From the NCBI GenBank assembly GCA_964247055.1, contig OZ176057.1:2976001-3040000 (forward strand): DNA of 64,000 nt. Direction: 5' to 3'. The DNA is from Paragordius varius (taxonomy: Eukaryota; Animalia; Nematomorpha). The notes under the pieces were generated by a model, which ran no database searches, had not been told where the DNA came from, and saw only the letters and a list, made by a program, of their open reading frames with translations. Position 1 is the stretch's first letter, and each line of letters opens with the position of its first letter. Below are positions 1,805 through 56,100 of the stretch, piece after piece. A program made the position numbers and the translations under genes.

Positions 1805-3409
1805 TAATATAAATATCTCATATTTGCATTTGTTACTTATTATGTGATTTAACAGTATATATATATACTATATCTTCCTAACCATATAACACTAAGATAC
1901 TCAAAATTTTCATTTCATTTTATATTGTTTATTACAATATTCACGGAGATATATGCATGTTTGGAATTTTTAGTGACGCATTTATTGAACTACTCATCCC
2001 AACAAAAAATTAATAACCTTTTTCCATATAGTGATTAATTGATTTTTATGTTATATTTTGATGATTTTGATTGATTAAAAATGGGATTTTGTAAATAAAT
2101 ATACCCTAATTTTATATATTTAATATTGATTAAAATATATCATGTGTAAATTATTTTATCAATATTACCTAATTGAATGGTATAAAAAGGCTTGAAATTT
2201 ATTTAACAAAAGATACCCACTAAAATTTAAATTATTTTATAATTAGTTTTTGTAAATAGAAATAAAACAATCTTACCCATACATAATTAAATGATTATTC
2301 AATAATTTGGTGATAAAAATGCAAACATACGGTTCAACAGTTGGATACAACACATTCATTTCAGTCCTTCGATTCCATACAATAATTCAAAAAATATAAT
2401 GAAAATGGCGACAATTTAGTTTTTGATTTTTTAAAACCAAAATTTATATTTTGGCTTATTTACAAATTTCTAGTAAACAAGCAAATTTAAGTTGGAACCG
2501 TTCCTCTCAGTAGTTTATTCAAAATATTAATGTTATCCGAATTCGAATCAAAATAAAAGTTAAACATATGTAAAAAATATTTTTCATACAGAAAAAAATA
2601 TTTTTTGTCCTTGATTTTCTATGTAACATATATGAATCAATTTTAAATAAATTATAAAGTTTGACCGATTATCTATTTAAAATATGGTAGAAAAAGGAAT
2701 AATTTGTGCTTTTTGTCTAAAACGTAAAAAAAAATAGATAGTCACCACAAAATACTTGTATCAGTTTTTTTCAATTGTCGATAAGATTTAATGGTATAAA
2801 TTGATTTACCATTTCAACCTAGAACACAAACATAAAAATACAAGTGCATAACTTTATAATTTTAATAGGTTTTAAAAAAAATAAGTGACACATAAAAAAA
2901 CGTATTTTAGATTTTTAAAACCCTTAAAATTTTATTTTTGTAATATTTTATAAAATTTGGAGAGAACACCTTATACAATTATTTTTTATATATTAATAAT
3001 CTGAAAATAATAGACATTAGTTAATATACAGCTCTCAAATTTTTAAATTAGGATACCTTACTACCATTTATTTAATGTTTATATTGATTCAAGGTTAATT
3101 ATATTTTTATTGTTTTACTTATGCTAGCATAGTTTCAAATAATGTTTTATTGTACAAGAAATTTGAGACGCTACTTTTGTAGATCAACAGCCCAAATTTT
3201 TAGGTGTTTAAGTATTAAATTACCATAATTTTAAGGAAGCAGGGACACTTTCCTTCATAATAAAGTTTATAAAAAATATAATTCAAGGACACCTAACGAA
3301 ATTGATATTTTAAAATTTTGTAAAAAAACTTGACTATAAAAGGACAATATTTCATAAAATTTTGTATATTATTTTTCAAATCCCACCAAGCTATTCAATA
3401 AACTTTACA

Positions 3410-5347
3410 ATGAAAATTCGAAGCAACTCTTTACAATATTATGGATTGATTGGATTATTATTTTGCCTACTACAGTGCCCAATATTTGCTGGTAACATAT
3501 CGATTGTCCTTTTAAATTTAATATTTTACCATTTTTATGATTATAGAAAGAATCAAAATTTAGACTTTGAACCTTAATAACAGTAGAATATAATAAAACA
3601 AATAAAAAACATTGTCTGATATGCATGTTGACATGCTTGAAAAAATATACCTTTACTTTGAAAATTGAATACTCTTTGGAAAAAAAAGGTTTGTCTAAAA
3701 ATTTAAGGGTGCATCAAAATCAGGGTTTCAATTTTCAAAATGTGTGCTTTGAATCAAAATTATTATGCAGTAAGAAACACAGTAATGGTCGGTTTTTGTT
3801 TAAAAAATGACGATCGTTCATTCGACCCAAAAGTTTCTTTAAATAAATTACCAAAACTGATTCCACCAAACATTATTATATATTTTAGATATTGTTGGTT
3901 TGTCTGAATCAAATATAGCTGAAGTCCCGAAATCAGTTATTGACGCTCCCCCAATAATTTCAAAAACATCTAACTCAGAACCCCAATTACCGCAAAAAAT
4001 AGGTATAAATGTATACATATATATATGATGAAAATAATGCCTTATTGAAAACAGTAAAAAAATATGTATTAATATAAACTTTATCATTTTTTAGCAATAC
4101 TGATAAAATGACCTTAAAAATGGGATTGCGATTGCCGGACTGCAGAACAAACCAACCATATATTTAACAATATAAAATTTTTTTAAACATATGTTATATG
4201 TTCAAAAGTATTTAATTTGTTTTATTCTTTATATCATTTATGTCCAAAACAAATGGTTCTGAGGGCGGCATTTTTGACTTAAAAAATGAGTACCGCAGAA
4301 AACTATAAATGCGACTAAATTTTCACTAGATATCAACAAAACTGTAAAAAAATTTATCACAATATATGCCAAAATTTATTCAAGAAATATGTATACTTAT
4401 TTGAAAACTACCATTTTTTTTAATTATAAAATTAAAAAATTTAAAGGTAAAAATGCGGCCTGTGGGTGTACTCGACACCCTGCTTCAATTTTATAGAACA
4501 TTGACTTACTTTTTAGCCTCTTTACTTAAACTTTATACGTATTTAATAACTGTAGAAGCCAATACATCCAATGAACATGCTTTGCCTGAAGTTAAAAACT
4601 CTTTGGTAAAAATTATATTATATTCCAATTCTAAATTTTACATAAAAAATATATTTTATAGAAATATAAACAATCAAAATACCCTTTCTATATTTATTTT
4701 AATAAAACTAATTTAATATGATGTTATGAATTTATGATTTGCAACACAAAAAGCAAACATAAAAGAGGATCTAAATCTAATATATTAATTAATAACAATT
4801 TACAATATGACACGTTGTATAATTTACTAAATTTGCATTTACATAAATTGTAATTGTAACTACATTATAAATGGCAGTAAACATTGGAATTAAAGGACAA
4901 AACGTAAAAAAATAAAATATTACTTTTTTATGAACCTTAATTTTTCCGCATAAACTATTTAATTTTATAAGTGTAAAACACATGGTTATTAATATTTATA
5001 TCTATTTTATACTTTGTAATTAATAGCGAGAAAGTAGATTTAAAAAAAACAATAATGAATACATTATATTGTAATGTTTTGTGAGGACAATTTCAATTTT
5101 ACTGTAATTTACTTAGGCTGCTCCAAACCCAATCAGACGACCTTCTACCAGCCATAAAAAGCCTCGCGCCCGAAAGCCCAATCTTAGACGGCCCCCAATA
5201 AAAAAACCGCCAAATAAAAAGCCTCCAAATAAAAGGAAGCCGCCAAAGAATCGTAAACCGCTGATCTCCAAAAAACCTATAAAACCAATCAAAAAGCCTG
5301 TAAAAAAACCATCGATACCAGCTAAAAAACCATTTTTCTTTTTTTAA
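3410..5347 (+). CDS. Orphan secreted precursor, 158 aa: signal peptide, Ser/Pro/Glu-containing pro-region, Lys/Arg/Pro-rich C-terminal domain
   Basis: Exons 3410-3491, 3889-4002, 4556-4605 and 5117-5347. All introns are GT-AG, phases 1/1/0 join into one open frame of 477 nt, and AATAAA overlaps the stop. Exon 1 encodes MKIRSNSLQYYGLIGLLFCLLQCPIFA (hydrophobic core typical of a signal peptide). Exon 4 encodes AAPNPIRRPSTSHKKPRARKPNLRRPPIKKPPNKKPPNKRKPPKNRKPLISKKPIKPIKKPVKKPSIPAKKPFFFF*. Confidence 0.75.
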
Positions 5348-6084
5348 TAAATGCTTCATGTAATTTGAACGTTTTAGTTTGTATAATAATTAAACATTCA
5401 TTATTATGAATCATATTTTTTAAAATGTTCACATTTTATACTTTATGAATTAATCATATTTTTATGGGAAGTTTGTATATTGTCAATCTACCAAATCAAC
5501 ATTTGTAATTATGTTTGTGATTACCCAGCCAATATATTTTAAGAATTGAATAAATATGGATAATAACTATATTTTATTGTGTATGAAAAATTTGAACTTA
5601 AAGTTCATTCTTTAGATCATGAAATTCTTAAATGTCAAAAAATTTAAACAATAAAGACACACATTAGCTATTAGGGTCTTTTTAGTGAGAGAAAAAATAA
5701 TAAATATTATTGTTTTTTCTTGTTTACTATAAGTTGCAAGAAAAATGTGTGCTCATACATTTGTAATCACTTTTGTAACCAATTTTTACTGCTGATAAAC
5801 TTAAACTTTAAAGAAAATTTTTTATATTCCAGGAAGTATACCAGATTTTGCGGACAAAAAATACATTAATAATATGGGTTGCAATGTTCATTTTTTGCTG
5901 AACATTTTTATCACCTCAGAAGAATTAAAAAATTCTATTCATCCAGGTTAAGTTTAATAAATATAGTGTTTTCTTACAAAGATGGACCAAATTAATTTTA
6001 AGTAGACACACTTTTAAATTAAAAATCTGAAGGGATAGAAATCAGCAATATCGAATTACATAGAAATAGTTTTTAATAATATAT

Positions 6085-7866: not shown

Positions 7867-8716
7867 TGATAAAACATATAAATCAATAAATTATGGTCGA
7901 TTCCAAACTTAAATAATTTGACGACCAACTTGAAATGTTCAAGGACCAAAGTGTTCAGACACTCTTGAAGTGCAATGGTAAATTATTTTTAAAGCTTCTA
8001 AAATTCCAAAACACAAAGCCAACCAAAAAACGATGTAAAAAACCATCCTCGAGAGCAGATTTTGCCTATTTTGGGGCAATAATATAGAACATTTTACATA
8101 AAACACTTTAAATAACTTCAGCAGTTTTTATATTTATATAGGTATATTTAAACGATATCTAAAAAAGAAAAAATGGAATGACTCTTTATAATATTACAAA
8201 ATCTTAAAAAATATCTAATTTTGGCCAAATTAAAAGATATGCATTTAACCTTTTGGGCTCTTTATCAAAATCTTCAAAAAATATAATTGTATTAAAATAT
8301 CCTTTTTAGACAATTAGCGGAATATTGTATTTTCTTAAATGGCTGCATAAATTAATTATGATTATGAATAAAATTAATTTAAATTTTTTTGGATAATATG
8401 TAAATTTTCCATAGAATTACTTCAAAAATCTGTTGTTTGAAACTAATTGGGTGCCCACTTAATTTTAGACTGTAGATATACCAAATTATAAAACTTATTT
8501 TATCTAATTTAGATAAATCATATTTTATCAAAAACAATACTATAATACCACTACACAACAAATTACTTTTTTTTAAATGCCATTCTTGTAAATAAGATTT
8601 CATTCAAGTATATAAATAGTATATCTGGAAAAAATGGGTCTAACAGCAAAGTTTTTTAATACGGTTTATCGATAATTTTTAAGCCCGATTTAACATTGAA
8701 ATCGGTTTTAGCTATA

Positions 8717-9429
8717 TATACCATTTACACTTCAAGAGTGTCCTTGAACAATTCAAGTTGGTCCTTGAACAATTCAAGTTGGTCCTTGAACAATTCAAGT
8801 TGGTCCTTGAACAGTTCAAGTTGGTCCTTGAACAGTTCAAGTTGGTCCTTGAACAATTCAAGTTGGTCCTTGAACAGTTCAAGTTGGTCCTTGAACAGTT
8901 CAAGTTGGTCCTTAAAATTTATAAATTTTGATTTAACCATAATTTTTGCATTTATTTTTTTATTTAATTATTTATTAACCTAATTTTCTTTATTTATTAT
9001 ATATTTATTCATTTAATAAATTTTTTTATTAAAAAACCACTTTTTTTGTTTAAAACTTTTTTTCAATTAAACAAAATTATTGACTTTTAAATGTTTTTAA
9101 TGAAAAATTTTAATAAATATCCCAGAAAACTTATATATTTTTTCATTTCGTGTTAAAATCTTATAAATATCTAAATTTATTTTAAGAAATTAATAAAGAT
9201 ATACGGTTTTTCAAAGATTAAAAGTTGATATCGATTTATAATTTATGTTAAATAATAGAAAATTGGTTAAAAACAATAAGATAGACGAATTATTTTCGAT
9301 TTGATTGATAAAAGTTAAAAACAAAACAAAAAAGTTAAAGGACCAACTTGAATTGTTCAAGGACCAACTTGAATTGTTCAAGGACCAACTTGAATTGTTC
9401 AAGGACACTCTTGAAGTGTAAATGGTATA
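8717..9429. mobile_element. Foldback element with long inverted arms built of 21-bp tandem repeats
   Basis: Left arm TATACCATTTACACTTCAAGAGT followed by 8 units of GTCCTTGAACA(A/G)TTCAAGTTG (8740-8907). The right arm is its reverse complement with 3 units (about 9340-9429). A further right-arm fragment lies at about 7920-7980. Confidence 0.8.
8740..8913. repeat. 21-bp minisatellite, 8 contiguous units
   Basis: Directly visible unit GTCCTTGAACA(A/G)TTCAAGTTG with no spacers. It produces the spurious repetitive ORFs (FKDQLEL)n and (SLNNSSW)n. Confidence 0.95.
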
Positions 9430-12909: not shown

Positions 12910-15900
12910 TTAAGCCGAAGATTTGTAACTATTCTTGGAAAATCTGATTGTATTGTTATTGTAGTATTGATCCTCAAACTTTTTTTGGCAACTCTCTGGT
13001 TGACCGGATGATATACCCGATGAAAATATCCCATTACTATCAATTTTCAACGAGTCAAGCTTTTGTTGTGATTGTGCATTAAACTGTGTAACCAAATTAT
13101 ATGGATTGTTCCAGTCTGGTGGATTTAATGGCACATTCCCAGACGCCAACTGATGGTAAAATGAATCGGTTGTAGTCTTGACAAACATATGATTTCTGGG
13201 TTTTTCACTTTCTTTGCTGCTGTCTTGACGATTAGTGTTACTATTTTCCGGCATTTCATAATTTCCTTGATTACTTTTACATTCTTCGGAAGAGAGCGCC
13301 GAGGGCGGCGATGGCGTAGAAGTCGGAACTTCCGGTATAATTCCATGTAATTTTTGAAACAATTTTAGTTGAGCCATTTGATAACTCAAGGTTGATTCAT
13401 CATTAGCCATATTTACATTATTGCCGGTAGCAGCATTATCATTGTGATTGTTAGCATGATGGTCAGACGACAAGAAGGCAGATCTGACTATACTATCACT
13501 ATTGTAACGTTTATCACGTCCTGCAACATTCTCATTCTTATTCGGACGAGAGGGCGAATTGGACCAAAACCCTTGAGAAGCCAATGATGTGTTTTCATTC
13601 AAATGATTATTTACCATATATTGGTAAATATTATTATTTCCGTTATAATTGAAGTATTCATGATAAAAGGCCTGATGACCCACGCTTTCTCCCGAAACCG
13701 TTTGATTGTCCGACTTATAATTCATAATGTTATTTCCCTCTGATTCGTCTTCCAAGAATTTTAAGACATCGTTTGGTGGTTGTGATTCCAAAATAGATGA
13801 TTCGGTACCAAAACTACTACTTTTCCCATGTTGATCACCCTTATTAATATTATGGGCAATGGTAACATTTAAAGTTTCATTTGGTTGATTAACAGCAATG
13901 TCCGAAAGTGGGGAGTTTGAAGAAACAGCTGAATTTAAATGAACATTGGGTTTTTCTTCCATACTAATTGTAGAGTTTGTAACTGTGGATGATCGAGCCG
14001 CCAAAAACTGATTGAGTTTTGCGATTAAAAGATCTTGATAATGTTTTTCATCATGGCTTTTTTCACAATATTCGTTAGAATTATTATTCATACCATTTAA
14101 TAATGTCTCAATGTCGGTGGTAACACCGAAATGACTAGATATAGAGCCATTATTGTTTGCAGACAGAACCGCAGAATTTTCATTTAAAGTTAGTGAATTT
14201 AATTTTTCTGCGTCATTTGCGCAACTAGAAGTACCGTTTATATTAGACATCAATGAGAATCGACGAGCTAAAAGCTCCTTGAGCCTTTGTTGAATTTGAT
14301 TGGAGGCTTGACAGTCGGCGTTCATTTGATTGTAGTTTCCGCTGGCAGTTAGAGAAAGAGAACGCATTTGTTTCATATTATTTATTGACGCCCCGTATCC
14401 GTCTTGCAAAGATGTTTGCTGATGCAATGGGTAATTGCTTCCGTACGTATTGTTAGTATTGAAATGATTACCGGCATTTAATGATTGACGCAAATATTCC
14501 TGTCCAACACTACTTCCATTGGTCCCATAATTGAGTTTTGTTAACAAACCCATAAGAGCATGTAGAGTTTCTCCAGTAGGCTTATGGTTTGGGGTTTGTT
14601 TATTGCCTAAGCAGCCAACTAAAAGTGATAAAAGTGATGAAATTTGCTGATTGGGATTATTGGTTTGCCCACAATATTGTTGAATCATGTCAAGCAAATT
14701 TTGATACGAAATCCCTCTAGGACCTGAGAGATATATGTAAAAAACGGTTATTACCATACAATAAAATTTTAGTCGCATAAAAATAAAGGAATTATGGTTA
14801 TATTGAAAAAAAATTCGATAATATTTAAAATATTAAAATAATCAAACCTCCTTGATTAAAGCCATTTGGATGTAGATTAATGCTTCCAGCGCCAACCATG
14901 CCACCATTTAGATTGGCCGGGGCCGGTATATGTATCACGCCCTGACTCGCCGTAGTACTGGCCAAAATTCCACCCGACATACTCGTCCGCACAGCAATAT
15001 GATTTTCAATTTGAATTCTTGCACTGTGCACATTAGCCGGGTTTCCTGTAATCTCAAACACTGGCTCCCTATCCCGACTTGGGGTTACTATGTAAGTGTG
15101 TGTATTCTGTTGAATGCGTTTTATGGTTGCGCCTTTGGGGCCTACAACTAAGCCAACCACTTTATACGGTACCCTAACACGTATAGTTATTTGCGTATTA
15201 AAATCGTTATTATTACCATTACAGTTATTAATTCCGTTTCCATTTGGAGCCATTAATGAACACGCTTGATCACCTAGTAGAGCACCGTTGGAAACTACTC
15301 CATTGCTATTAGCTGTTGATGCAAAATTGACATCAACGGGAAAACCATTACCAATAACTTGAGAATTTGGTAAAAGGTTATTACTTGTAGTACTTGTATG
15401 ACCGGCGTTACTCGTTTCCATAACGGCAGAATCACTTAATTCAGTGGCACTATTATGCACCAAGAGATGACTAGATAGTGTTTGGGAAACTGAGCCCTGT
15501 GGTTGGACTTGCTGTAAACAGAGCATGGAGGAATTTGGATTATGCGTATTTATGCTAGCATTATTATTATTTTTATTATTCAACATAAATAAATTGTTGG
15601 TTGTACGGTCAATTTCGTCAGGAACGCCCAGAATACTACCATCATTGTTAGCATTAGGGTTTGGGGTAAAAAAAGTGCCCGCAGAAACCGAATCAAGTAA
15701 AAATGGCGGTGCTGAATTTTTACGGCTCGCGCGTATAGCACTAAAATGTTCAGCTGCCAATATGATTTCACGTTTAGCTATAGTGACATCTTCTTTCCGA
15801 CCAGTAACGACAAAGACCGGCTCCTCGCCTCGAACCGGCGTTTTGATGTACGTATTAGTTTTTGCCCTTAAAGCCTTAATTTTGCAACCTAGAAATGTAG

Positions 15901-18900
15901 AAAATATATTATTTTAAATCAAATAGTTTGTGCTAAAAAAATAGTTATTGGTATTTGAAGTCTAATGGGTTAGGTCAAATATTTGCCATAAAATTTAAAA
16001 ATTTAATTTTCGGATGATTTGAATGTTTTTGCATATATATAATAATTTAAAAAAATTGCATACCTTATTGTAATACGACTAAATTTGAATGTCCCACAGT
16101 TTACAAGAAAAATCTTTTAAAATAACATATAATTGGATTATTTTAAGAAATATTTGAATGTAAAAAAATAAATTCATAATTTCATATTGTGTAGCCAAGT
16201 TAAAAATAATTTGGATACCACTTGTTTTATACATGACTCACGAAACAAAAACACAGAGCTAAAATGACCTTTAACCGAAAACTTTAAATTATATAATAAT
16301 ATTTTGAATATGAAATTATAGGATGTTTCTTATTTTGTAATCATTTTTTGATTAATTTTAGTATAACCAAAAGTTCAAAATGTTTAACAAAATAGGAGTA
16401 TCAGAACCATAAATGCAGACAAAAATTGTAGAAAATTATCTTCATGGGTTCAAAGAGAAAAAAAGTACAAAGGATATATAGGTATGTATAAACTAAATAA
16501 AAAGTTTATATTTTACAGGATAATATTTTTTTAGCTAATAAAAATATTATTGGTTAATGGCATGTATATCGGTGAATAACAAAAATACGTACAAAACAAT
16601 CACAGTACTAATGCATTAATGTTAAAACCATTTAACCAATATTATGGTTATCCTTAAAATTGTTTTCCACAATACGAAACATCTTTTCGTAACCACGAAA
16701 CCTGATAGCTTTGATCTTTTTTGGTTTTTGTTATTTGCTGTAGGGAGAGCATAAATAGCAAATCAAACATTTTATAAATGCCTGGAGTGTGAACTCATGT
16801 TCTTACAATGTTTCGTTCTAATATATACTTATCCAATACAATTATTAAGAAATAAATTAACATATTTACATAATTACTTTTGTATAGTAATATAAAATTT
16901 GTTTACAAACTAACATTTAAATTTTATTTATGGTTCGGATACGAGTGAAAACAAAATGAGTTCAAATGTCACTGTACTTTTTTTTACCCAAAAGAATGTT
17001 GTTATTTTTAGCATGTCCTTATCAACTTGGAACTTTATTGATTACAGTATGCGCATTTAAATTAGCCAATAGGAAACACAGTAGTATATGGGTAAAAACA
17101 AGATAATTTTATAATTAAACAATTTTTTATTTTCTTACAACATTAATTTGTTAATTTTATGGACAAAATTCGTTTTATAACACACGCTGACTAGGATAAA
17201 TGTGCATAGTTTGAATGGCATATTTAATTTATAACTTTTACAAAAGCTTTAAAACCAGGCCAGCAATCTAAAAATGTTCAAGTTTAATGAACTCACAATA
17301 TGGTTGTTTTTAAACCTTTTTTGTTAACATTATTTTTGGACTGAAAAAAACAACCAATAACAAAATATACATGGATTCTATGGATATTTACTAAATAAAT
17401 TAAAACAAATAAAAAATCAATAATATTTTTTTGGATACTTTACTTTTTTAGCATTTCCTAAATATCATGTATAAAAAATATTAATTTATATGTAGACTTA
17501 GATGATTGTAAATTTTTTATACAATCTTGAAAAATCGAATCAAATTACAATTAAAGCTTTTAATTATTCACAGTAGAGTATAATTAAATAAAAATTTTTC
17601 CTATGTTTTAATGCCATATTGTACTGTATAAAGATTAAAATTATAAATTTATTTAAGGTGATAAAAAATATTTTGCTATAGTCATTCATCTTTGATTTGT
17701 AAAAAAATTATTGCCTTATATTATTACAACGTCATTTTCAAAATTCTGCGGGGCTTTTAGGATGTATCCATTTTCTTTTAATAAATGTGTCGTTTTGGGT
17801 AGATGGAGATAATATCTAAAATATGAACATCTGTCGAGACTGTTTTATAAAACACTGTAAGCTTACATAGTAACGTACAATAAATGGAGTGTAATCGAAA
17901 TTTAAGTTGGGAGGTCACAAATGTATCATAACAAAATGACACCAATAAACACATAAAAAACGAAAAGGACATTCCCCGTTTTGTTTTAGTCAGAGATGTG
18001 TGCTTATGCCAAATATTTCGTAGCTTCGTAAAGTTTAGTAACCCTAAAATCGCCACGCACTAAATATCGATTTACAAGCGTTGGTTATACACCATATACA
18101 TTATAGTAAAACTGTCCCAAATTTTATGACACGACCAATGAATAGCACGTTTAGAAATCTGTTCCTTTTGTACATATGATTGTCTGCCAATAATTACATA
18201 AAAAATTTAGATTACACAAAAAGAAAGATGTTTATAAATGTACATCATAATGTTAGCCTATACGAGCTTGGGGTAAACGTACTTGCATTTCTCCATTTAT
18301 TAAACATCGGAAATGAGAGAAAACAATGTAACTTACCGTACATATGGATAGGGGCATTATGCATTGTAAAATATGAGTAATAACAAGGAAATTCTAAAAA
18401 TAACTTTTAACAATGAACAGTAATGAGCAAATGCTATCCAGAGTAGCAAATAAAATTTACTTTTGATGTGTTGGGTACGGAAGGGTAAAAATATTTATTA
18501 AAATAATAAATTGATTAATAAAATCTTAACCGTATTGTTTGTAAAAAAATTTACAAAATATAAGCATGTATATAATGGATATTTAAAAAAACTGATTATT
18601 TTCTGCAAAAACATTTTAATTCAAACAGGATGTTGTTATCAAATTTATTACAAAGCAGTTTATCAAAACGAATGATCATAAATAAAATTAATTATTCATT
18701 ATTTATCCAATATTTATTTGAATAAATTATAAAATAATTAAATAATTCATAAAGTTAAACAAGAAACTGACACATTTAAGTTATTCTTAGAATTTAACAC
18801 ACCTCTTTAAATTTATAGTTTTATTTGTGTCTATGCGTAAATAATGACCTAATGAAATAAAAATGTCACCTGAATAGATTAAAGACTCTAAAACTAAATT

Positions 18901-53083: not shown

Positions 53084-53104
53084 TCACTTCCCCCCCCCTT
53101 TAAC
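53084..53104 (-). promoter_or_regulatory. Polypurine tract
   Basis: Minus strand AAAGGGGGGGGGAAGTGA directly precedes the 3' LTR. Confidence 0.85.
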
Positions 53105-56100
53105 AAAAGCGGGCAGGTTTCTGCCGACTTCTTGTCGGGTACCGCCGTTCTTGTGTTTTAGCGGGGGAGTAGATAGTCTCAGGTTTCTGGGTATTATCAT
53201 TATTTGGACTTTCGGCTGTCGGAGTAATTGGTTCGATTTCGTCCCTTGAATTGATCGTATTTGGTTGCGTTTCAGCGATTGTTCCATCATCCGTGGCAGT
53301 GGTTACCTCCTCCTCATTTGTGTTGCTGGAAAAGGTCGGCTGTGGTTGTGGTTGTTGTACTATTTGGTCAGCGTGTTTCCGCACAACTTTGTCTCGGTCC
53401 TTGTCCCATACCTTGTATGAAAATAACCCTGTGCGGTCCGTAATCTCTCCGGCGCGCCATCCTGGACTTAATTCATTTTTAATCATTACCTGGTCATTAA
53501 TGGCAAACTGCCGTCGGGGGGCCGGTGCATCTAACAATCTCTCCCTACTATTTAACCAGGTTAAGGGCGTATGGGGGGTACGCTTAAACATTAACTGGGC
53601 CGGGGTTTCTTTCGTTGTTGAGTGTATAGTTCTATACGCCCATAAGCTAGTGTTAAACGCTTCGTGGGTGGATAACCCATTGTTTTTTATTCTTTTGTAT
53701 TTATTTTTTATTGTACCTACTAACCTTTCTACCATCCCATTACTCTTAGGGTGGTAGGGGGTAACCTTAATATGTTTCACCCCTAACGTACTTAATGTTG
53801 ACGTAAAGTACTCGTTACTGAAATATGAAGCGTTATCGCTCACAATCTCTCTTGCAAAGCCAAACCTTGCAAACGTTTCTTCTAATTTGTGGATTATATT
53901 CGCTGCGGTTACCTTTTTCAACATAAATCCTTCTGCCCATTTCGAGGCACTATCAATTATCAACAACCAATACAAACGGTCTACCGGTCCGGCTATATCA
54001 ATATGCAAACGCTCCCACACAGCAACATTATGATCCCACTGATACGTGGAATTCTGAGTGTCATTCGGCCTACTACGTTGGCACGATTCGCATTGACTAC
54101 TGGCTTTTACCAGGTCATTTTCTAATTCTGGCCAATAACACGTAAATCTGGCCATCGCTTTCATGGTCTCTACGTTGTTATGCCCGCTGTGTAGGTATCT
54201 CACCACCTCTTTTTGGAGGGGCTTCGGAATTACAATCCGATCATTTAAACTTAATAAGCCATATTGATATGCCAACTCGTCTTTACGGTTTACAAACTTT
54301 TTTAATTCTGGAGAACTCCAGTCATGGTTGTTTAACGCTTTAATTACTTTTTGTAATACTGCATCTAATGCAGTTTCTTTTCGAATTTCATCTCGGCTTA
54401 ACCGCACGTTATGACAATTCAAAAATCTCAAATATCTGGTAACCGCATAATCTTCATCATAGGCAACGATCTCGTCAATCGGCCATCTCGATAAATAATC
54501 AGCTCTATTTTGAGCCCCTTTTTGATGACTTATTTCAAAGTCGTATTCATTTATCATATTAATCCACCTTAGTATTTTAGCATTATGAATCTCTTTTAAA
54601 TTTCGATCTCTATTTATTAACTTTACTAAGGGTAAATGGTCAGTTAATATTGTAAATTTTCTACCATATATGGAACTATGAAACTTTCTTAACGCAAATA
54701 ATATTGCTTTTAATTCCTTCTCTATCGTGGAATAATTCCTTTCAGCGTTGCGACATTTTTGTGAGGCATACGCTATCGGCAACCTTTCACTATTAATTTC
54801 ATGACTTAGAATACATCCGAATCCTAAATCTGACGCATCAGTTTCTATTATCAATTTCCTATTCGAATTATATGGTGTTAAAAACACTTTTTCGCTTAAC
54901 AAATTCTTAGCTGCTAACCAGCTTTTCTCATGTTTCTCAGTCCAATACCATCTCGTATTTTTACTAGTTAATTCATGTAAGGGACCGACTATTATTTGTA
55001 ATTTTGGTATAAAGCGTTCATAAAATGTCAAAAAACCTAAAAAGCTACGTAACGACTTTTTATCTACCGGCCTTTTTAGTTCCTTGATTGCTTTAATTTT
55101 GCTTTCACAGGGACCTATACCCTTTTTCGATATTTCAAACCCTAAATAGTTTACTGATTCTGCCCCTATCATTATTTTATCTTGTCTTAATTTAAATCCG
55201 GCCTTATCGAGACGACTTAATACGTTATTTAAATTGTTAATGTGCTCATTTTCCGTCCTACCAGTCACTAGGACGTCATCTAAATATACGCAAGTTCCCG
55301 GACTTTCAGCCAGCACTTTTTCCATCACTCTTTGGAAGATGATAGGTGCCGTGGCCAGTCCAAACGGCATGCGTTTGTATCTAAAAAAACCCTTATGTGT
55401 TGAGATAGTTAACAATTCTTGACACTCCTCTGCCACTGGCATCTGGAGGTAAGCATCTTTTAAATCAATTTTCGTGAATGTGATACCTTCACCTATTTTC
55501 GACACCAACTCATCAAACGTGGGAATTATGTGGGAGTCTTCTTGCAACCACTTATTAATCGTTACTCGAAAATCACTACATATTCTTAATTCGCCATTCG
55601 GTTTAAGTACATTAACCGTAGGCGTGGCCCATGTCACAGGTGTGGTGTTAGGATCAACCGGTTCTAAAATGCCTAACTTTTCTAGCCTCGTCAGCTCTTT
55701 CTCCACCTTTTCTCTTAATGGAAAAGGCACCCTGCGACATGGCCATACTTTCGGGATCGCATTCGCTGCAATGCGAATTTTTACAGGGTCCTTATAACAC
55801 CCTAACTTATTTTCGAATAAATTTTTAAAATTTTCACAAATCTCATTCAATTTAAGATAATTAACTCTAACCTGTGGCATCTCAATCTGGAATTTCGCCA
55901 TCCAGTCCAGTCCACAGATTAGCGGGGCCATTTCCATCGTTTTGCATAGGACACATATGTCCCCGACCATTTGTTTACCATTTACTTGGACTTTGACACT
56001 TGCTGTCCCCATCATTGGCACTGTGGTATTGTTGTACGATTTTACTGGGGGTGTCGGATGCAGCTTGGGTTTACCGATTTGCTCCCATGTGGCAAAGTTT

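Follow-up and report, generated by a model that had tools for sequence, protein, structure and literature searches.

Lys/Pro-rich proteins are used for adhesion and coating, as in the decapeptide repeats of mussel foot protein 1 and the polycations of coacervate cements. Lys/Pro-rich tails are also found in linker-histone- and protamine-like proteins, which are nuclear and have no signal peptide. Engineered cationic peptides with oligo-Trp or oligo-Phe end tags, reportedly described by Schmidtchen et al. in 2009 (J Biol Chem 284:17584, reference 74 of PMC11476776), are said to bind membranes better and to kill in a salt-resistant manner. Among proline-rich antimicrobial peptides (PrAMPs), those of the ribosome-targeting oncocin/Bac7 type are built on a Pro-Arg repeat core around a Y-L/R-L motif, in which Lys cannot make the N-terminal contacts made by Arg (PMC4797290), and those of the apidaecin type keep a PRPPHPRL end and derive from polyproteins with RREAEPEAEP-like processing spacers (PMC11549390). 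Here we describe a locus that probably encodes an orphan secreted polycation binding polyanionic surfaces, and compare it with these systems.

The locus lies in a window of 64,000 nucleotides (G000:C8:2976001-3040000), which is the whole stretch of DNA that was analysed, in an animal genome of 110.6 Mb and roughly 25% GC. The gene model on the + strand has four exons, bounded by GT-AG and phase-compatible, and encodes 158 codons (27+1+37+1+16+76). It is made up of the following features.

3335-3342, + strand, candidate TATA box TATAAAAG, 75 nt before the ATG at 3410 with no intervening ATG
3410-3491, + strand, exon 1, with its ATG in the context ACAATGA, encoding MKIRSNSLQYYGLIGLLFCLLQCPIFA plus 1 nt (27 codons, phase 1)
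3889-4002, + strand, exon 2, 114 nt, phase 1-1
4556-4605, + strand, exon 3, 50 nt, phase 1 to 0
5117-5347, + strand, exon 4, 76 codons plus TAA
5346-5351, + strand, AATAAA, candidate polyadenylation signal overlapping the stop codon

A first-pass annotation of this DNA had proposed the same 158-residue layout of four exons, and its coordinates, junctions and translations were reproduced to the base. Introns 1, 2 and 3 measure 397, 553 and 511 nt, each running from GT to AG, and the codons split across exon junctions read D and E. The donor of exon 1 is GTAACA, and that of exon 2, which is well defined, is GTATAA. All four exons, read in the proposed frame, have a GC3 lower than either GC1 or GC2. 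Exons 2 and 4 fall on GC islands, exon 2 overlapping the island at 3891-4000 with a GC content by codon position of.46/.41/.22. Two GC islets were observed within intron 2, one at 4091-4170, which has no Rfam match and is not repeated, and the other at 4431-4520, which is the start of an ORF (4453..4716) in frame with exon 3. No ncRNA or tRNA was found within the locus.

The signals that flank the model differ in their background frequency. The TATAAAAG octamer is rare, with 2 occurrences in 80 kb of control sequence, whereas TATAAA as a mere hexamer is frequent (2.9 per kb). The AATAAA at the stop codon is the sole one in 5330-5450, and against a background of 3.6 per kb the support that it lends is modest. 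At exon 4 the ORF list contains antisense frames alone (5099..5359 and 5113..5292, both on the − strand), as the first-pass annotation had remarked in calling them a shadow of the gene; the reason is that the sense frame of exon 4 has no start codon.

Exon 4 encodes 20 Lys, 8 Arg and 20 Pro and neither Asp nor Glu, giving a net charge of +28 and a Pro at every fourth residue. The motif KKP occurs seven times, the dipeptide KP 11 times and RP twice; PRP and Tyr are absent, and the C-terminus reads KKPFFFF. These counts agree with the make-up previously noted for this exon (28 Lys/Arg, 20 Pro, free of acidic residues, with KKP motifs and an FFFF end). In the + frame Arg is encoded by both AGR and CGN codons, so that its basic residues persist whichever codon family is used. 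Exon 4 also contains two internal tandem repeats with periods of 15 and 9 nt, which are multiples of 3. Searches and folding were run on the individual exons; for exon 4, supplied as a single sequence, AlphaFold2 predicted a chain devoid of secondary structure (pTM 0.14).

The false positives to be expected in A-rich DNA are 'cationic' translations full of Lys and ATG-ORFs of hydrophobic character. Exon 4 was compared with open and with non-coding sequence. Among 253 open stretches of at least 50 codons in the window, it ranks at the top both for Pro (0.26, where the 95th percentile stands at 0.10) and for K+R (0.37, where it stands at 0.21). Its GC content is 0.41, compared with 0.19-0.25 in the introns, and this level was reached in 3 of 3890 presumed non-coding windows of 228 nt (0.08%). 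All 10 stop triplets in exon 4 fall in the other two frames (p about 0.02), the CC dinucleotides are distributed over the three phases as 20/5/4, and the period-3 power lies in the top 1% both against shuffles and against non-coding windows. An artefact of AT-rich composition does not account for exon 4.

Protein and DNA searches of the genome with exons 1, 2 and 4, each taken separately, revealed no second copy, and a DNA search with the whole locus revealed none of exon 3. It had been named beforehand that exon 4 might prove to be a fragment of a dispersed repeat; it is single-copy and not a repeat fragment. A repeat element does, however, lie immediately beside it.

4875-5104, no strand assigned, TA-flanked MITE of about 230 bp in intron 3, with the terminal inverted repeat CAGTAAA...TTTACTG

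The family to which this element belongs has the terminal inverted repeat CAGTAAAAATTGAAATTATACGGACAAAACG and at least 50 copies genome-wide, with 68-91% identity. The element ends 12 nt before exon 4, and its matches stop at window position 5111 or earlier. With the MITE this close to the exon 4 acceptor, a branch point could be located only within the element, which counts against the model, although the T-rich end of the element is similar to the surroundings of real acceptors.

Several other elements were observed in the window. The neighbour of the locus is a MEX3 homologue with two KH domains (12913-15913, − strand), which has long Asn/Ser-rich low-complexity parts and in which two long open stretches, each in its own frame, meet at 14828-14832, as though a frameshift or a tiny intron came between them; taken as a synteny anchor, it brought up no close relative. 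A 24-bp minisatellite occupies 8696-8983 and, as a shorter inverted copy about 300 bp away, 9211-9420; it is open in several frames, for example as SLNNSSW repeats. A Gypsy-type pol ORF with RT, RNase H and integrase (53100-56021, − strand) and a DUF4371-like, transposase-related ORF (30066-31202, − strand) were also found.

HMMER, run with exon 4 as query on a set of 1.84 billion representative proteins, gave 0 matches, the query itself being absent too. The blank means that the product is unannotated and without detectable kin; it does not mean that the gene is unexpressed. It is in line with the lineage-specific nature suggested for the gene at first pass. The ESM Atlas yielded nothing usable for exon 4, the PDB only a chance match (E=1.7), and Pfam no family for exons 2 or 4. 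In JGI metagenome contigs, 600 pattern matches were obtained and 0 were confirmed. Protein and DNA searches for paralogues in the gene's own genome returned the locus itself only, and a search of that genome for the KKPxKKP codon pattern gave 9 matches, compared with 13 for the reversed control, with no KKP-repeat family. Among the KKPxKKP matches is an intact single-exon orphan ORF of 404 codons (L068:1161-2375, − strand, G000:C9 about 3332860-3334074), whose start is signal-like and whose middle is rich in Pro, Tyr and Asn, and which also has a block rich in Lys and Pro (KKPIPKPVKKPKK..KKPPKKP); this ORF has no Pfam match and gave no BLASTP alignment to exon 4. The cuticle families Chitin_bind_4 (PF00379, arthropod) and Col_cuticle_N (PF01484, nematode) had no match in the whole genome, a result that speaks weakly against an arthropod or a nematode.

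Exon 1 had been described at first pass as a signal-peptide-like segment, and it passed a crude signal test in keeping with that description. The peptide has Lys at position 2, Arg at position 4 and an uncharged core, GLIGLLFCLL, with a mean Kyte-Doolittle hydropathy of 2.8, and it closes in phase 1 directly after I-F-A, with the small residue A at −1. By this crude rule only, it has the features of a classical signal peptide, namely a basic n-region, an uncharged core and small residues at −3/−1. The same test was passed by 6 of 191 chance ATG-ORFs (about 3%).

These features have to be weighed against the possibility that the locus is not a gene, but an A+C-rich low-complexity island, such as a decayed codon-sized minisatellite, that is open by chance and whose signal-like ORF and links are chance picks. 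We consider this unlikely, although it deserves serious attention. Open stretches of at least 70 codons are common in the window, numbering 90, and an open frame by itself is thus no evidence. Chance alone is expected to supply about 0.15 signal-like ATG-ORFs per 2 kb per strand, and the absence of a homologue from the protein set, the Atlas and the metagenome contigs searched would fit a chance island as well. Splice signals discriminate little. In the HSP70 and myosin genes of this genome, seven real introns were sampled, which are 28-490 nt in length and show a weak consensus, with GTA, GTT or GTC donors and mostly TAG or CAG acceptors, and the donors and acceptors of the model resemble them. 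Because the consensus is weak, linking exons are easily found by chance, and 41 phase-compatible candidates (open AG..GT segments of phase 1-1) lie between exons 1 and 3. An HSP70 gene has a 28-nt GT-AG intron (GTTAAAAT...TTTTAG) at G000:C4:12482552-12482579 (L044/L049).

Codon usage was scored with a table trained on 2071 codons from HSP70 and myosin exons of the same genome. Exon 2 scored +5.3 bits, a value reached by 7% of control pseudo-exons (p about 0.07), and exon 3 scored +7.1 bits, reached by 1.8% of controls (p about 0.02). Exons 1 and 4 scored −6.8 and −10.8 bits, both within the control distributions and hence not above chance. Housekeeping codon usage backs exons 2 and 3 only, not exons 1 or 4. 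A chance island is, on the other hand, hard to reconcile with exon 4 being the single extreme for both Pro and K+R at a GC level so seldom found in non-coding windows, with the confinement of its stops to the other frames, and with its phase-locked CC dinucleotides and period-3 signal. In addition, TATAAAAG, the ATG, the GC islands, the stop codon and the AATAAA align on one strand.

The model is weakest at exons 2 and 3, which cannot be pinned down by a splice consensus as weak as that of this genome. Their translations agree with the Ser/Pro/Glu-containing spacer read earlier: together with the split codons they form a mildly acidic stretch of about 55 residues, containing Ser, Pro, Glu and Asn, with 8 D/E and 4 K/R and no Cys. 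Alternative acceptors for exon 2 are present at 3919, 3925 and 3937, and for exon 3 another donor, in the same phase, is available at 4591. The boundaries of exon 3 are provisional. Exon 3 sits within the ORF 4453..4716, and its frame is open upstream to an ATG at 4453, which allows a different beginning.

4453-4605, + strand, alternative first exon, whose ATG at 4453 shares the frame of exon 3; it would lead to a model of two exons and 127 codons with no convincing signal peptide

With this start, or with different internal exons, exon 4 would still be coding on the + strand but would belong to another transcript; starting at 4453, the product would be an intracellular basic protein of a nucleic-acid-binding or sperm-chromatin type. 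Lys/Pro-rich tails are indeed typical of linker-histone-like proteins, the ORF begins in a GC islet, and the alternative splice sites of exons 2 and 3 leave room for other internal structures. We nevertheless regard such a transcript as improbable. The exon starting at 4453 does not pass the crude signal test (its best hydrophobic window reaches 1.63) and has a codon score of −2.0, the sole TATA-like string in that region precedes the ATG by about 25 nt, and exon 1 together with TATAAAAG and the exon 2 island would be left unexplained. The reading we favour, by a little over even chances, is a secreted product linking exon 1 with exon 4, whereas we rate it somewhat less likely than not that the four-exon model is correct in every boundary.

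The strand of exon 4 requires separate consideration. The antisense frame that shares wobble positions with exon 4 is open, and for this reason neither periodicity nor GC3 can separate the two frames or fix the strand. The island at 5116-5343 could then be a − strand exon for a Gly/Phe/Leu-rich peptide, read in a frame that is open over 75 codons and has a better housekeeping codon score (+4.9) than the sense frame. This frame has no ATG, however, and the sequence before its possible acceptor is A-rich, unlike the real acceptors sampled; neither a start nor promoter or poly(A) signals were seen to accompany it. Moreover, the Arg codons of the + frame become a mix of Leu and Arg, and Pro wobble changes become Phe/Leu changes. 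Coding on the − strand is therefore very unlikely. The call for the + strand rests on the series of TATA box, ATG, splice sites, stop codon and AATAAA, on the A-rich context of the − strand acceptor, and on the encoding of Arg through both AGR and CGN codons. We hold with fair confidence that exon 4 is coding on the + strand.

From these features of the sequence we infer transcription, splicing, secretion and every functional step of the following scheme. A lineage-restricted, single-copy gene on the + strand would give a transcript that starts about 45 nt before the ATG at 3410 and ends just past the stop codon, and splicing would join roughly the four exons given above. The product would enter the secretory pathway by way of a cleavable signal peptide of 27 residues. 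The mature protein, predicted at about 131 residues and without a fold, would consist of the mildly acidic head of about 55 residues followed by an extended 76-residue polycation with a Phe4 end. Its Lys/Arg-Pro chain may bind polyanionic surfaces by charge, such as microbial envelopes, acidic matrix or mucin-like proteins, or nucleic acids, and the Phe4 tail may add a hydrophobic or cation-pi anchor. Whether such a protein would act as a defence peptide or as a component of a coating or glue is a guess from sequence; the same physics would serve both, and we rate the two about equally. A bolder suggestion, which we advance as a long shot, is that a natural end-tagged polycation of this kind, a secreted polyproline-like Lys/Pro chain with an oligo-Phe anchor and no kinship to known PrAMPs, represents a new class of host-defence molecule or a cell-entering parasite effector.

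As it stands, the locus is a plausible orphan gene model, whose value is that of an annotation lead and a cheap candidate for peptide synthesis. If expressed, it would bring a secreted polycation without relatives to an animal lineage of which little is known. The overall interpretation given at first pass holds in so far as a spliced + strand gene with a signal-like exon and a single-copy, basic, Pro-rich exon is plausible, but the proposed prepropeptide and the relationship to PrAMPs are not supported. For the former, no recognisable convertase or dipeptidyl processing site is present: the junction between spacer and polycation reads ..KNSL/AAPNPIRRP.., where RR is followed by Pro, and 13 of the 28 Lys/Arg residues precede Pro.

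Kinship to Bac7/PR-39, apidaecin and penaeidins, to which the first-pass annotation had likened the layout, is not supported, in view of the excess of Lys over Arg, the absence of a PRP/YL core, of PRPPHPRL, of a polyprotein arrangement and of a cathelin or Cys-rich domain, and the lack of any Pfam match. The likeness to PrAMPs is of a general kind: a secretory precursor and a cationic chain with Pro at every third or fourth residue, without Cys and without an amphipathic helix. That the locus encodes a true ribosome-targeting PrAMP precursor, cleaved to a short peptide that is taken up by bacteria and blocks the exit tunnel, can be set aside as extremely improbable, since its high Pro content and net positive charge behind a signal peptide are offset by a Lys-dominated composition (K 20 and R 8, KP 11 and RP 2, no PRP) where Arg contacts need Arg (PMC4797290), by the absence of PRPPHPRL and polyprotein spacers (PMC11549390), and by the lack of a site that would release a short peptide. 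The individual groups differ from the present locus in distinct ways. Oncocin/Bac7-type PrAMPs have an Arg-Pro repeat core, whereas exon 4 has the reverse preference for Lys and no Tyr. Apidaecin-type (Type II) PrAMPs have PRPPHPRL and repeated peptides set apart by spacers, whereas a single cationic block ending in KKPFFFF is found here. The cathelicidin-derived Bac7 and PR-39 carry a cathelin-like pro-domain, in place of which the present model has a Cys-free spacer of 55 residues, and neither exon 2 nor exon 4 matched a Pfam family. In penaeidins a Cys-rich domain follows the Pro-rich N-domain, whereas the model has no Cys beyond the signal peptide. Furthermore, PrAMPs span about 18-60 residues, compared with 76 here, with an oligo-Phe end and no processing motif. 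Judged from sequence, the product would at most work like cationic Pro-rich peptides in general and would not be a member of the ribosome-targeting PrAMPs.

With adhesive and coating proteins the predicted product shares secretion, disorder, a Lys/Pro-rich and repetitive composition, and aromatic residues suited to cation-pi contacts. It differs from them in that its cationic part has no Tyr/DOPA, Gly, Cys or long regular repeat array, and in being a single small protein with no genomic family. Linker-histone- and protamine-like tails resemble it in their KKP-type motifs, their extreme basic charge and their extended, unfolded chain; in contrast to these, a signal-like exon heads the best model here, and no globular H1 domain or Pfam match accompanies it. 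Functionally, the closest parallel is offered by cationic peptides engineered to carry a hydrophobic end tag, in which an unstructured polycation is likewise combined with a short terminal aromatic run. The engineered peptides are designed and 10-20 residues long, whereas the polycation of this locus would be a natural Pro-rich chain of 76 residues behind an N-terminal acidic head, and the likeness is at the level of sequence only. If expressed, the protein would be a natural counterpart of the aromatic end tags that have been engineered onto cationic peptides.
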